Positions 1-6,671 of a stretch of 64,000 bases of DNA are shown piece after piece (position 1 is the first letter of the stretch; every line of letters begins with the position of its first letter). The DNA is taken from NCBI GenBank assembly GCA_016748015.1, contig JAAOMT010000289.1:1-64000 (forward strand), in the 5' to 3' direction. Source of the DNA: Geosiphon pyriformis uo1. Its lineage: Eukaryota > Fungi > Glomeromycota. Made by a program: the position numbers and the translations under genes. Below the pieces are notes generated by a model. That model was not told the origin of the DNA, did no database searches, and saw only the letters and a program-made list of their open reading frames with translations.

Positions 1-535
1 GTAAAACTATTTTATATTTTACAGCCAAATAATTCAAACTTTAATACTTAAAGCAATATTAACAACCAAAAGTTTTTTATTAAATATAACATCTTTACAA
101 AATATTAGTTTTAATTATAATATTATTTAAGTTTTTTTGAAAACTGAAAATAACAATAAAAAAATTTAACAGGTGTAATTATTAATTTAAAAGACCAACA
201 AACTGATTTTAAAAACAGTACAGCCAGAAAAAAACCAACCAATTTAGCTTTAAATAAATATTTAAAAGCAATAAATTTCTTTTGATTAAAAAAAGAGAGG
301 GTTTTTTTATCAGCACAAACCAGCACACAAAGCAGTTTTAACACTTAAAATAAAGAGCAGCATATTGTAAAACACCAGCAGACTTTAACTTAACTTTTAC
401 TACTTTTACCAAAAACACCAAAAACAATCTTAACATTATTTGGCATAACATTTGAAGGAATGTCAAGAAAAGCAACAGTAGCGGAAACAGGAACAGAACT
501 CGAGTTCACAGAAGACTGTAGTCTTAAACTTTTGG
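1..535 (-). mobile_element. Decayed LINE ORF1 fragment
   Basis: Minus strand reads approximately TVAFLDIPSNVMPNNVKIVFGVFG-(frameshift)-KVVKVKLKSAGVLQYAALYF. This resembles the RRM-like ORF1 segment VVLKEIPIGTSTEAVHAALSKFGIIKSIKMQLV of the LINEs later in the window. AT-rich, with stops. Confidence 0.5.
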
Positions 536-657
536 TTTAAATTAATATTCATTAAATCATAAGTCCCTGTAATGCAAAGTTCTTGACCAATCAAATATTT
601 TGCTCAGCTGATAAATCCAATCTGAACTTTGAATTTTTCGAATCGAAGTGATTATTG

Positions 658-3559
658 ATGGATACTCAAAAGGTGCAAAGGCCCAAACCGAAAAATCTAC
701 ACTCTATAAAGCAAGAAAGTACGATCACAATATCCAACAACGAAGGACCACAATCTCCCGTCTCCACTGAAATAGTAAAATCTTCCAAAAATAAGAAAAA
801 AGCCTCGCATCGGGGACAACATATGATTCCAAAACAAACTTCAATCGCGGCGGTTATACCTCCTGAAGTTTTCATCAAAATCTGTGAAAACTTGCCTCCA
901 GAAGCCCTCTTATCTTTAAGTCGTGTATGCAGGAGGTATCGAGAATTTTTGTATTCTACCACATCATCCTTATCACAACAGATGTGGACCACTTCACGAT
1001 TGAATTTTATGCGTACACTACCTTTACCACCACCAAATGACATGGATGAGATTGCATACATAAAATTGGCCTTATTACAGAGAGGGTGTCAATTTTGCCC
1101 AAGAAAAGCAAAACCCAAAGTATACTGGGCTTTTAGGGTTCGATGCTGCCGGAAATGTTTGTCGGCCAGAACGCAGAAGTAAGTCTTTAATATTTTGCTG
1201 ATTTGGTAGCCCAATTCATTTCACTTACTAAATTTTGTAGGGAGTTGCATATTCCTCATGATTTTGTATCTTGTTTACCTTTTGCAATCGTAGAAGGAGT
1301 TCGTTATTATTGGACTACACAAGCTCAAGCCGCTAAATTAGAATACAATGAAAAGGCTACAAATCTGGAAAAAGAAAATTTTCTTAACCAGCTTATTCAA
1401 AAGAGGGACGAGCGAATGGCAGATGCGACTGCTCGCGAAGAAGCTGCCAAAAAAGGACTTGCTCTAGAGATGGAAGGAAATAAGCACAAATTGTCTGTGC
1501 TGATAGAACGAATGTCTCGAGAAACAACTGATGAAGGGACTCCAAAATATAACATTGAAGATCTCAAGAAATGCCCAAGTTATCTAAAAGTTTCCTGTGC
1601 CCTTGATCAAGCGATAAATGCTACATTATTGAAACGAGCAATTGCCAATGAGTATGAAAGAATTTCCGCAGGGAGCGTGAAAAAGAAGAAGCAAAATGAG
1701 GTTCTCCAACTAATCGTAAAGCTTCGTCTAGCTTTACGTGAGACTCGAGGATATCAACAGTATAGAAAGTCGTTACATCAAAATCAATCCGAAAATAATT
1801 CACTTCTAAAACCTGTTATTAAACCGGATTCCATGACTCAAAGATATGCACGCTTTGCTCTCGATATTATATCCGCAGTATCGGGAAGAAGAGACAATAC
1901 AAGTTTTATGCAACCTCTTAATCAATGCGAAAAACTATTACGTTTTTGCCCCTCTTTCGTTCAGCCACCTTATGATTTGGACGAAATGGATGAGAATTTC
2001 CTCTTGAAAGTTTTTATTCCAAAACTTTGCCGAGAAGCGGCAGAAATTGACAAACAATTTCAACCCTGTTTCACTATCGGAAAAGCTCTTGCTCAAGGAT
2101 GGGCTGCTCAACGTGTTTTTAAATGCAAATTCTGTATGAACAGAAAACTTTTTAACTATGCTGGTCTTAAGCAACATTTATTTAGCCTTCGACATGGTGT
2201 GCAGACCATTGAAGCAGAAAAGATGATAAGGTTACATTTGATGCATGGTATTATGTCAGATGGTCCTGGAAATTTTTGGCTAGCCCATTTGCCTATACCA
2301 AATATTACGGAACCAACTGATGTTATCGCAAAAGTTGAAATATCTGGTTTATGTGATACCGATACTCAAAGTAAGTTCCACTAGAATTCCACTTTATCAC
2401 GAGAATCCTTATTAATTATATTAATGTAAATCAAAATTAAGTCACCAAGTCTCGCTTTGGTCAACTCGATAAACGCACTGTCATGGGTCATCAGTTCGTT
2501 GCCAAAGTTTGTGATACCGGATCTGAAGTTAAAATCTTAAAAAATGGGGATAGGGTTATTTGCCCACCTCAAACTTCTTGCGGAGAGGTACGATACACAA
2601 ACCGACAATATATGATGTTTTCAGCATTTTCATATATAAAATTTAAAACTTATCTCCTACCAAAAATTCGAATTTGTATAAGTGCTTCTACTGTGAGCGT
2701 GACGCCACGTGTCATTGCGAAAGGGGAGAATTTTTCGGTTGGACCGTTGGTGGAAAACGATTTGATGGTGGACAAGCAGAATACGTAAGGATTCCTTTGG
2801 CCGAGACTTCATTAATAAAAGTTCAGGATGAAATCAGTGACAAAGAAGCTCTTCTTCTTGCCGATTATATTCCTGTTGGATATTTTTGTGCAGAAAATGG
2901 CCTTAACCAATTATCGGAAGAAGAACGAACAAAATGTGTAGTTGTGGTCATTGGATGTACCCCTGTAGGTCTTGCGGCTATAGCGGCGGCCTTTCATTTA
3001 GGAGCGAAAAGAGTTTTTGCGATAGATCATACACTTGAAAAATTAAATTTGGCACGTAAATTCGGAGCTACAGTAATTCATGTACGGAATAAAGAAGATT
3101 CATCACCTGTGATAAAAAGAGCCACTGGTGGAAGAGGTGCTGACGTTTTATTGGTATGACTGGTAAATCTTTTTGGCTGTTGAAATTTTTAAAAAATATA
3201 TTTATATCAAAAATTTCCCATCAATGTTAACTCCTTAGATTACAGAACATGAAGCAACCATCGAGCTGGCGCTTAAAGCTCTTCGACCAGCTGGAATTCT
3301 TTCCGTTGCTACTATGAATTGCCAACCTTTAATGGAAATAACTTCGGAACAGGATGCGATTATCATATCAAAACATTGTCCAATGCGTCAAGTTATACCA
3401 AAAGCTATGTCACTCGTTCTTTCAAAGAAATTTGACTTTGAGGAAATTGTCTCACATACTCTTCCATTAAGGGACGCTGAGGAAGGCTACAAAATTGTCA
3501 AGAATTCTGAATGTATTATGATGGCATTTATCGTTACCGATCAATATCCTGAACCATAA
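658..3559 (+). CDS. F-box protein fused to a C2H2-like finger and a Zn-dependent MDR alcohol dehydrogenase-like domain. Predicted exons 658-1178, 1241-2370, 2442-2587, 2683-3153, 3239-3559 (2589 nt, 862 aa)
   Basis: F-box IPPEVFIKICENLPPEALLSLSRVCRRY followed by CQFC..RCCRKC; finger CKFC-x12-HLFSLRH. In the same open exon follows the MDR start MHGIMSDGPGN..PIPNITEPTDVIAKVEISGLCDTD, then GHQF, structural Zn site CGE|CFYC-x7-C, GGQAEYVRIP, LADY and GGRGADV. All four GT-AG introns (62, 71, 95, 85 nt) preserve phase. Confidence 0.8.
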
Positions 3560-4569
3560 TGCTCCAAGATATACAACATTTGAACTTAATCATATAATTT
3601 AAAACATGATTGAACTTTATGAAGCAGTCGACTGTTCCCTTATAGTTGAGCCCACGCCTCTTTAATTCATTTAAAAGACAAGAATTTTTTATATCATTCT
3701 GCGAAGTCCCTTTCGACATGGAAAGATGAATCCAATTCTTTTGGGTTTAAGAGTCAAAGTTTTGATCAGATAATGATTTATGTTTAAAATAGACTTGGCA
3801 AAAGAACTGATTTTTCGAATCTTTGATTACAAACGTTAGGATTCAAAAAGGTCCGAAGTCAATATTGTGGTACAACATATCCTATCATTATTTTAATAGC
3901 AAAATCTGTTCATTCTGAGATAAAACTGGTCCCTGGAATGCAGGAATTAGTCTTTGCAAGATTAATACAGCAAATCTTTGGGTCCAGTGATACACAAATG
4001 TCCTTAGTATTGATGCAAATCAAAATGGCCATGATTAATAATAGCAGAATTACATCACCCATCCTCAATTAAAAATCTGAACAATAGTTCTCACCTGGAA
4101 TACTTTCGTCTATCAACTTCATAACCTGGGACGGCGTTACACTCAGTGTTCTCTGTGCAGCAGCCTTCAAAAATTCGTTTAGGCTTTTTAACTCAAAGCT
4201 TGGCCTAAGCTATCAAATAAGAAAACCGCATAATTCCAACAGATCTTGATTGTTCGTCTTTGGTGTGTTGTGGTGATATTTTGTTGGAATAGAACGTGTG
4301 CGAGACAACATAATCCCCAACTAACAATAATTCATTCTTTCGAGAGCTCTTAGCCCACTTGCTATTACGGCATTATTAGTCTTTTAATTATATCTGCTGA
4401 TTTCGAAAGAAGCTATTTACTCCGGTTTGTTTTAAGTTTCTTTTTATATGGATGGTCACTTTTAGATTGCTAAGAAGCTCGCTACTCTAAAGAATATAAT
4501 AGCACTTATAACAACCTTCAAAGACCTTTTAATCATCATTCAGACTATTTTTCTTATTTTCAGGAAAAT

Positions 4570-6671
4570 ATGTCCTCTAAGGATCCTTCTGAATCCTCAT
4601 CAGTATCATTGTCGGTGGTTACAGCAAACCTTTCCTCCTCCTCTTCACCGTCTTTATCACCGTCTAGCCCCTCCCCACGATCTACCCCTCCATCCTTTAT
4701 CTCACCATCAACAAAACCTAGTTTTATTGAACTTAAATCTATTTCTCCAGCGGCTTTAGTGAAAACAGCTGCCACAATACCATCAGAATTAATTTTTCAC
4801 ATTTTTAAATATGTTACAACAACCTCTGACATTAAATCTTGCATCTTGGTATGCAAGTCTTGGTGTAGTTGTGGAGTTGAGATTCTATGGCACAAACCAA
4901 TGTTTACTGCCACCGCATTGGGGAAACTGCTTTTTACAATATCTCGACCTACTCAAACATTTCCCTATGCACTCCTAATTCGGCGTCTTAATTTTTCATT
5001 TTTGGGGGAAAATGTGACCGATGGAATCTTAGCTCCACTTAGTGCTTGCGAGAGATTGGAAAGGCTCACGTTGGGTGGATGTCGTCGACTCACTGATGTG
5101 GGACTTTTGGGATTGTTGGATAAAGCAAATGGTTTGGTCGCGTTGGATGTCTCGGATATCGAGAACTTGACGGATGATGTGATTGAATTAGTTGGTCAAA
5201 AATGTCGGCGATTGCAAGGTTTGAATGTTAGCCTCTGCAAAAAATTGACTGACAAGAGTATTATCACGGTAGCATCAAGGTGTCGTAGCTTGAGGAGGGT
5301 AGGTCTTATCAAACTCAGCTCAATCGTACAACCCAGGTTGTGAATATCAAAATATTTTCTCTGACGTCAGGCTTTAATTGAAATTAGAGAATTTTTTTCT
5401 GGTTCTAATTAATGGTCTTTGTCTATGAAGATCGAAATCCCCTGGTGAAATTTTCCGCCAAAATATTATACATTTTTGAAATCTCCAATGTAGTTTAAAC
5501 GTGATTGTTGAATTAGGTTTATCCCTTACTAAATAGTTTTTTTTTAATAATGCAGATAAAGTTAAGCGGCTGTGAGAATATTCATGACGAACCTGTTATG
5601 TTGCTATCTCTCAATTGTCCCCATTTATTGGAGCTTGATCTCACCAATTGCAATCAAATCACAAATAAGGCTATCCAATCGGTCTTTGAAAGGTGTACAC
5701 AATTGAGAGAATTACGACTCGCTTACTGCCTCAATCTAACAGATGAAGCATTCACCAAGACAATGCCCTTATTCTTTGACCAGCTGCGAATTCTTGACTT
5801 AACTGCATGCACACTGATTACTGATCAGTCTCTTTTGAGAGTTGTTCAGTGTGCTCCCAAACTTCGCAATCTTGTTTTGGCAAAGTGCTCTTTCGTCACT
5901 GATGAAGGAGTTAATTACATCACCCGCCTTGGAAAACATCTTCATTATCTCCATCTTGGACATTGCTCACGAATTACTGACCATTCTATTACAAACTTGG
6001 CTCGTCATTGTACCCGTCTTCGATATCTCGACTTGGCTTGTTGCACTCAGCTCACAGATGCCGCTGTCTTTGAGCTTTCTCATCTTCCAAAATTACGGAG
6101 GATCGGACTTGTCAAATGTGCAAACATTACTGACTCGGCAATTCATGCGCTGATAGACCATCATGTAGTGTCGCATACTCTTGAACGCGTCCATCTTTCG
6201 TATTGTGGCAATCTTACCATTGCTGCAGTGTTAGAACTGGTTAATTTTTGTTATCGTTTGACTCATCTTTCCCTTACTGGTGTACCGGCCTTCTTACGGC
6301 CAGACTTGCAAAGATTCTGTCGACCACCCCCCAAAGAATTCACACCTCATCAACGACAAGTATTCTGTGTATTCAGTGGTAAAGGAGTAAAAGAGCTGCG
6401 ACAATATTTAAATAATTTAGTCATTGGCACTGTACACACTCGTATTACCAATGGAGACGATGCTGATATTGAAATTGTGCCACAAGGTGTCGAGGCTGAA
6501 GAGATAGGATCAGATGACTTAGATGCTGAAGGGACTGGTTCTGGTGGGGAAGGTGACGGTGAAAGAGATGATGGAGATCAAAATAACGATAATCACACTT
6601 CTACTGTCATGATTTCACATGCTGGTGACGATGATGCCCATGATGACGCCTTGTATATGCGCGGAATATAA
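4570..6671 (+). CDS. GRR1: SCF F-box/LRR protein, Grr1/GrrA ortholog. Exons 4570-5298 and 5556-6671 (614 aa)
   Basis: F-box IPSELIFHIFKY..CILVCKSW, Cys-containing LRRs, and Grr1-diagnostic segments LPKLRRIGLVKC, LERVHLSYC, LTHLSLTGVPAF and FTPHQRQVFCVFSGKGV. Intron GTAGGT(5299)..CAG(5555) is phase 0. Ser/Pro-rich N-terminus, acidic C-terminal tail. Confidence 0.93.

Follow-up and report, generated by a model that had tools for sequence, protein, structure and literature searches.

An F-box protein fused in frame to a complete zinc-dehydrogenase fold in Geosiphon pyriformis and Ambispora: a putative SCF substrate receptor

The window analysed here, i.e. the first 64 kb of contig JAAOMT010000289.1 (C726; 824,469 bp) in the 128-Mb, 792-contig assembly of the fungus Geosiphon pyriformis, carries on its forward strand, at positions 658-3559, a five-exon gene in which an F-box protein is joined in frame to a whole zinc-dependent dehydrogenase of the medium-chain dehydrogenase/reductase (MDR) fold. 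The gene model was obtained by reading positions 1-4500 together with a list of open reading frames (ORFs); its four introns are all GT..AG, lie in phases 2, 1, 0 and 0, and leave a reading frame that is unbroken from 658 to 3557. The translated model is identical to a protein already deposited in GenBank, KAG9299492.1 (P0018; 862 aa; 'hypothetical protein G9A89_020663'), and the exon boundaries proposed in the initial annotation, which had described the locus as an F-box protein running into an MDR, are the same as those of this model and of the deposited protein. The window model was searched against Pfam and genomes one exon at a time, and the deposited proteins, i.e. P0018 and its Ambispora counterparts P0002 and P0019, served for the work at full length.

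Exon 1 (658-1178; residues 1-173 of KAG9299492.1) encodes an N-terminal tail, the F-box (approximately 856-957, residues 67-100) and a Cys-rich CQFC...CCRKC motif, and is followed by a 62-nt intron (1179-1240). Exon 2 (1241-2370) is stop-free and forms one open frame (ORF 1203-2384) that runs from a helical region through a C-terminal module with a C2H2-like finger (2124-2195; C469 at 2124, C472 at 2133, H486 at 2175 and H492 at 2193) straight into the MHGIMSDGPG that starts at 2241, and thus includes the first 43 residues of the MDR. Met508 (2241-2243), which corresponds to the ancestral start codon of the MDR and is now internal, marks the boundary between homology to the F-box family and homology to the MDRs. 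Beyond intron 2 (2371-2441; 71 nt, phase 1), the position of which is shared with Ambispora gerdemannii, exon 3 (2442-2587) encodes a part of the MDR catalytic domain, including a GHQ motif (H567 at 2489, Q568 at 2492) and the beginning of the structural-zinc lobe. Intron 3 (2588-2682; 95 nt, phase 0) precedes exon 4 (2683-3153), in which the structural-zinc Cys cluster, the Asp-ligand motif LLADYIPVGY and the start of the Rossmann fold, GCTPVG (G690 at 2953, T692 at 2959), are found, and intron 4 (3154-3238; 85 nt, phase 0) precedes exon 5 (3239-3559, stop codon at 3557-3559), which holds the remainder of the cofactor domain and the C-terminal part of the MDR.

Assembled contigs from two separate studies show how this gene is transcribed and spliced. 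A 2624-nt contig from run X2 (depth 52.8) covers 659-1178, 1241-2370, 2442-2587, 2683-3153 and 3239-3566, so that all four modelled introns are removed exactly (e.g. at the joints 1178>1241 and 2370>2442) and the sequence runs unbroken from 659 to 3566; the run carries the label 'DNA?', but since its contigs are without introns it must represent cDNA. Adapter letters occur at 659 and 3566; they arise from the ends of the contig and do not map the ends of the transcript. A 1051-nt contig from X3, which derives from a different sample and study, covers 2134-2370 and then continues to 3544, thereby spanning the junction between the two halves and removing introns 2, 3 and 4 at the same joints. 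The X3 contig differs in one further respect, namely the removal of an optional 109-nt GT..AG intron within exon 4 (2785-2893; joint 2784>2894), which shifts the frame and leads to a stop after 15 codons (translation KMALTNYRKKNEQNV*), whereas X2 retains this segment, which encodes conserved MDR sequence. A G>T difference at 3065 is also seen in X3. The initial annotation had named three ways in which the fusion could dissolve, i.e. separate transcripts with a poly(A) site or a transcription start between 2200 and 2241, splicing from a weak GT near 2231 to a different exon, and a missed stop or frameshift. The contigs are unbroken over 2100-2370 with both X2 and X3 crossing the junction, no splice joint occurs near 2231 in the contigs of any run, and a 9777-nt DNA contig (X1) matches 205-4600 with zero differences. 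Upstream of the gene, the short A/T-rich segment 201-234 draws many short DNA contigs (depth about 390 versus 82) and is a dispersed low-complexity repeat.

The position of the gene at the very start of a contig, within the first 64 kb of C726, made it necessary to consider a misassembly or a merger of gene models. Positions 1-2102 of the window are identical to the last 2102 bp of contig C725 (598157-600258), and this exact overlap stops just 139 nt before the junction; because of it the 5' part of the gene occurs twice in the assembly, and GenBank contains a spurious partial protein, KAG9302228.1 (430 aa). An artefact is nevertheless contradicted by the DNA and RNA contigs, which traverse both 2102 and 2241 without differences, and by the presence of the same fusion in two independently assembled Ambispora genomes. 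Moreover, homology to the F-box family extends past 2102 to about 2240. We consequently rate an artefact as extremely improbable.

Exon 1 passes the curated Pfam thresholds for an F-box, both for PF12937 (F-box-like; 34.7 bits against a cut-off of 24.3, E 1.5e-8) and for PF00646 (24.8 bits against a cut-off of 20.5), and the same result was obtained on P0001. The genome contains at least four loci with a Skp1 domain. A full-library HMMER search with exon 2 recovered 17 relatives, and the matches to paralogues stop at query residues 327-335. The family is found throughout the Glomeromycotina, i.e. in Rhizophagus, Funneliformis, Gigaspora, Cetraspora, Dentiscutata and Acaulospora, and among paralogues in Geosiphon itself. 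C469, C472, H486 and H492 are invariant in 12 family members (alignment A1), and in every other member the CPSF..NPP...REA...CxxC...H...H module lies at the C-terminus, with a stop codon 5-45 residues further on. Members such as Geosiphon P0003, Rhizophagus P0009, Gigaspora P0010 and Funneliformis P0007 thus share the F-box and the C-terminal module with its invariant C, C, H and H, and the two-exon layout of the P0003 gene (L004) matches that of the F-box part of the fused gene; whereas these proteins terminate with the module, the frame of the fused gene continues into the MDR, which occupies the point at which the other members stop. Two tandem paralogues with the C-terminal finger module, encoded on contig C343 (127326-132291; L003 and L006), have 238-aa and 367-aa ORFs and each carry the same 128-aa antisense ORF, a repeated layout that suggests local duplication of the F-box family.

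The middle region of the protein (residues 175-520) was predicted by AlphaFold2 with a mean pLDDT (predicted local distance difference test) of 81, and consists chiefly of long helices plus the finger. A Foldseek search of these residues against the PDB yielded nothing at E <= 0.001; locally, the C2H2-like finger resembles a C2H2 finger in structure, but weakly (rank 45). In an atlas structure search the same residues retrieved only the same Mucoromycota F-box family, at a TM (template modelling) score of 0.33, with no known domain assignable, and a protein-atlas feature search with the whole protein gave no usable match. As judged from the homologs recovered, the helical region that ends in the C2H2-like finger is specific to the Glomeromycotina.

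The MDR homology of the C-terminal half begins precisely at the ancestral initiator methionine (MQAITFQQPF...PIPKI in the standalone proteins versus MHGIMSDGPG...PIPNI in the fused one), which indicates that a near-complete F-box protein was joined to a complete MDR without a linker. Geosiphon has a canonical standalone MDR on contig C727 (53% identity over exon 4, with the same intron layout), and standalone copies are likewise present in both Ambispora species (P0155 in A. leptoticha and P0157 in A. gerdemannii), across the Glomeromycotina, and, among other early fungi, in Endogone, Umbelopsis, Basidiobolus and Spizellomyces. These standalone zinc-MDRs, e.g. Gigaspora rosea P0023 and A. leptoticha P0155, are often labelled 'threonine dehydrogenase-like Zn-dependent dehydrogenase'. 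They share with the fused MDR the fold, the zinc ligands and the structural-zinc lobe, and the introns of the fused MDR lie at the positions found in the Geosiphon paralogue. In contrast, the fused MDR is only 36-44% identical to them, has a long stem, has at least six subfamily-invariant catalytic or cofactor positions replaced, and sits behind 507 residues of F-box protein. Maximum-likelihood trees were made from two hand-picked sets, one of 24 listed homologs (4 standalone MDRs of Glomeromycotina plus 20 others) and one of 20 homologs plus the Geosiphon standalone copy, represented by its exon 4. Within these sets the three fused MDRs described below form one clade (support 100) inside the MDRs of the Glomeromycotina. 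The stem of this clade measures 0.85 (LG+G4) to 1.27 (C20 mixture) changes per site as compared to 0.1-0.4 for neighbouring stems, while the branches within the clade are short; its sister group is not settled by the trees. The fused MDR is, on these comparisons, a fast-evolved duplicate of the canonical standalone enzyme. Another protein in which the domains ADH_N and ADH_zinc_N are combined with a foreign one is P0020 of Penicillium chermesinum (507 aa, annotated as 'Yippee-like'), which contains in addition a Yippee domain (PF03226) and is 32% identical to the fused MDR; either a further fusion that involves an MDR or a merger of gene models could explain it.

Conservation of the fusion was established by sequence searches. 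The sole relative that spans the entire exon 2 is P0002 of A. gerdemannii (791 aa; 56% identity), in which Pfam detects ADH_N (E 2.7e-20, 73 bits) and ADH_zinc_N (E 2.3e-12, 47.4 bits); P0019 of A. leptoticha came from a search restricted by length, for which residues 430-862 were the query. Both Ambispora species carry the junction KLHLMHGIMSDGP of the Geosiphon fusion unchanged, and all three fused proteins read ...K(M)(I/M)(R/K)LHLMHGIMSDGP... at this point. At the A. gerdemannii locus (L010) the genome contains the full F-box exon, which is absent from the deposited model, exon 2 is open through the junction, and the three MDR introns lie at the same positions as in Geosiphon; at both Ambispora loci the gene ends with ...DQYPE(P/LII) and a stop codon. 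P0019 was deposited as a 1463-aa protein, and the possibility that it represents an F-box-MDR-LRR (leucine-rich repeat) architecture was rejected: the genomic exon 5 ends in ...DQYPELII plus stop, so the 1463-aa model is a prediction error in which the LRR part results from a run-on into the adjoining F-box-LRR gene. In the sequence searches made, a fusion of this F-box family with an MDR was found in only three proteins, those of G. pyriformis, A. gerdemannii and A. leptoticha, and it thus appears to be confined to the Archaeosporales.

The gene has been maintained by purifying selection. Ratios of nonsynonymous to synonymous divergence (dN/dS) were calculated per exon by the Nei-Gojobori method for A. 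gerdemannii versus A. leptoticha, and amount to 0.08 for exon 1 (117 codons), 0.16 for exon 2 (366 codons), 0.15 for exon 3 (35 codons), 0.25 for exon 4 (149 codons) and 0.21 for exon 5 (85 codons); when the per-exon codon counts are summed, the 440 codons of the F-box part give 0.15 and the 312 codons of the MDR part give 0.19. The strongest purifying selection acts on the junction itself, where the 50 codons that lie within 25 codons on either side show 2 nonsynonymous and 11 synonymous changes (dN/dS 0.028). As the upstream F-box gene is without a stop of its own in all three species, the MDR is necessarily part of its product unless the transcript is spliced differently. The central proposal of the initial annotation, i.e. 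that this is one gene with an F-box in frame with a whole MDR fold, is in this way borne out by the deposited annotation, by spliced contigs from two studies, by conservation in three species and by purifying selection: the F-box-MDR fusion is real and constitutes one expressed gene.

The same data bear on the possibility that the locus yields two products, in which case an internal promoter, or Met508, would serve to make an MDR-like protein mostly by itself, with the long fusion as a minor or unstable by-product. Such an arrangement would account for the retention of the ancestral MDR initiator methionine in three species, contigs are by nature unable to reveal where transcripts start, and the start of the X3 contig, at 2134, precedes Met508 by only 107 nt. 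However, a further X3 contig covers 1818-1982, which makes the gap before 2134 look like one of low coverage, and the X2 contig is continuous over 659-3566. The F-box gene has remained without a stop in three species since their divergence, no alternative splice out of it is seen in the contigs, and no other part of the gene is as constrained as the junction. We therefore regard a predominantly separate MDR-like product as distinctly improbable.

With respect to its neighbours the gene is only partly embedded in a conserved context. Downstream on the same strand lies an F-box-LRR gene of the FBXL type (window 4353-5343 and beyond, ATG at 4570), the 5' leader of which contains, according to the X2 contig, a 139-nt intron (4424-4562). 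The fused gene and this FBXL gene adjoin in both Ambispora species too, a conserved pairing that explains the merged 1463-aa model in A. leptoticha. The upstream neighbour in A. leptoticha is DBR1, whereas in Geosiphon the single match to DBR1 is separated from the end of C725 by about 323 kb, so that upstream synteny is not kept. The comparison of synteny in relatives that had been suggested at the outset thus holds on the downstream side and fails on the upstream side.

The question then is what the MDR half may do within an F-box protein. That the fold is whole follows from the alignment to the nearest solved structures found by phmmer, both alcohol dehydrogenases, i.e. 4cpd (E 2.3e-41, covering residues 16-348 of 355) and 5yln (E 8.6e-39). 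Exon 3 scores 26.4 bits against ADH_N (cut-off 23.5) and exon 4 scores 48.9 bits against ADH_zinc_N (E 7.9e-13), and at whole length both domains of a zinc-MDR are present. The picture is different for the catalytic and dinucleotide-binding motifs. In an alignment of the three fused domains with their 120 best standalone homologs, the zinc ligands C545, H567 and D660, the four structural-zinc cysteines (cluster 597-611) and the Asp at the end of beta-2 are kept in all three fused copies. The motif CGSDLH has become C(D/P)TDTQ in 3/3 (in the enzymes G and S are each found in 118/118, L in 118 and H in 119/119), and GHE..G has become GHQ..A in 3/3 (E and the following G are each found in 120/120 enzymes). 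The dinucleotide motif GxGxxG reads GCTPVG, GCSPVG or GCSAVG, with T or S at the place of a second glycine that is found in 120/120 enzymes. In addition, in all three fused copies, the Thr of D...TG is replaced by Val and the Arg of RC in the zinc lobe by His (each residue 119/119 in the enzymes), and the Gly of the (E)AVG motif by Glu or Asp (120/120). The fused domain thus has neither the catalytic motifs nor the GxGxxG motif of its relatives. From MDR enzymology, the replaced Glu and His belong to the zinc and proton-relay system, and the Gly of the dinucleotide site lets the pyrophosphate approach closely. These replacements, as read from the alignment, argue against normal catalysis and normal dinucleotide binding, and we infer that the fused MDR is a pseudo-dehydrogenase.

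It is against this background that a sensory role has to be weighed. In analogy to TIR1, COI1 and FBXL5, the MDR could be a working sensor of a small molecule or cofactor (zinc, NAD(H), an alcohol or an aldehyde), or still an active dehydrogenase, and gate the activity of an SCF (Skp1-Cullin-F-box) ubiquitin ligase. The retention of the catalytic zinc ligands, of the four structural-zinc cysteines and of the beta-2 Asp that reads the adenosine ribose is compatible with such a role, as is the purifying selection on the MDR (dN/dS 0.19), and the fact that the replacements are alike in three species suggests a pocket that was redefined rather than one that decayed. Nevertheless, four of the residues replaced here (Glu in GHE, His in CGSDLH, the second Gly in GxGxxG and Gly in AVG) are invariant in the 120 nearest enzymes, and they occupy positions that serve the zinc and proton relay and the approach of the dinucleotide pyrophosphate. 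A working sensor or enzyme is consequently unlikely in our estimate, and the sensor of zinc, NAD(H) or alcohol/aldehyde envisaged in the initial annotation is, in that form, not supported and made less likely by the replacements in all three copies.

The reading that we favour, and to which we attach moderate confidence, is that of a single fused gene encoding an SCF receptor whose degenerate MDR serves in recognition or oligomerisation, i.e. an enzyme fold that, to judge from its residues, has probably been reused as a binding module and not as a catalyst. A module for protein recognition or oligomerisation fits the pattern of retained fold and replaced residues better than the sensing of a metabolite or NAD(H) does. 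In mechanistic terms, the putative substrate receptor would bind Skp1 via its F-box, and the MDR module, which retains the fold and the zinc ligands and would no longer act as a normal dehydrogenase, would instead function as a protein-recognition or oligomerisation domain. In the most specific version it would pair with subunits of the MDR type, including the active paralogue of its own species, and such pairing would bring MDR subunits to the ligase or dimerise the SCF complex. Carried further, this would make the protein an E3 adaptor that arose from a duplicate of its own target, in which the dead MDR pairs with the active standalone MDR, so that the SCF, by recognizing the standalone MDR or MDR oligomers in general via the ordinary subunit interface of the family, would control enzyme abundance (paralogue-directed degradation). 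This elaborated form we consider quite unlikely.

Since the MDRs of this subfamily are oligomeric and each species keeps an active paralogue, the pairing was modelled. For residues 434-791 of P0002 together with residues 1-352 of P0157, both from A. gerdemannii, the heterodimer prediction reached a score of 0.60 as compared to 0.00 for the best control, which classifies as 'weak support'; three runs agreed in at least 78% of the contacts and the pLDDT of the partner was at least 82. Scores of 0.60 or lower were given to only 5 of the 78 solved complexes that passed, but to 4 of the 4 mismatched pairs that passed. On these models, the recruitment of ADH-like enzymes by oligomerisation, which the initial annotation had offered as its alternative to sensing, is possible.

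Several points weigh against the favoured interpretation. The heterodimer prediction is weak, and any pair of MDRs from the same subfamily would be expected to give a result of this kind; the fact that it passed could stem from likeness to solved MDR dimers, and true pairing and family likeness cannot be told apart on this basis. From the loss of invariant residues, a loss of activity or of NAD(H) binding can be predicted but not proven, and with the zinc ligands and the beta-2 Asp kept, an altered role in ligand binding is possible. RNA-derived contigs cannot prove a single transcript or place its ends. An internal start at the retained Met508, giving a separate MDR-like protein, is therefore possible, and the X3 isoform that lacks 109 nt would truncate the MDR, if it is not simply a target of decay.

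F-box proteins acquire new targets via swaps of their C-terminal domain, and several borrowed domains are familiar, i.e. JmjC in KDM2A/B, a helicase in Fbh1/FBXO18, hemerythrin in FBXL5, ApaG in FBXO3, LOV in ZTL/FKF1, and LRRs that act together with a small molecule in TIR1/COI1. The protein described here resembles these in that the F-box, N-terminal or internal, precedes a globular domain that stems from another class of proteins and is used for recognition or regulation, and differs from them in that the partner is a complete zinc-MDR (ADH_N plus ADH_zinc_N) that is apparently degenerate with respect to catalysis. To our knowledge an MDR is not known as a partner domain of an F-box, and a search of the literature on F-box proteins with alcohol dehydrogenases or pseudoenzymes did not yield a paper that reports the F-box-MDR architecture. 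The proteins themselves are already present in GenBank and UniProt, unnamed or as hypothetical proteins; the novelty lies in recognizing and analysing their architecture.

As far as our searches show, a whole zinc-dehydrogenase fold at the C-terminus of an F-box protein has thus gone undescribed. The locus represents a clean and datable gene fusion, in which an F-box gene took up, at its stop codon, a neighbouring duplicate of an enzyme, whereupon a burst of change at the catalytic positions was followed by long-term constraint. If it is true that the dead domain recognizes its active relatives, this would constitute a simple route along which the specific degradation of a metabolic enzyme can evolve. 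The fusion is also a marker of the Archaeosporales, a lineage of fungi related to arbuscular mycorrhiza whose cell biology is almost unexplored.

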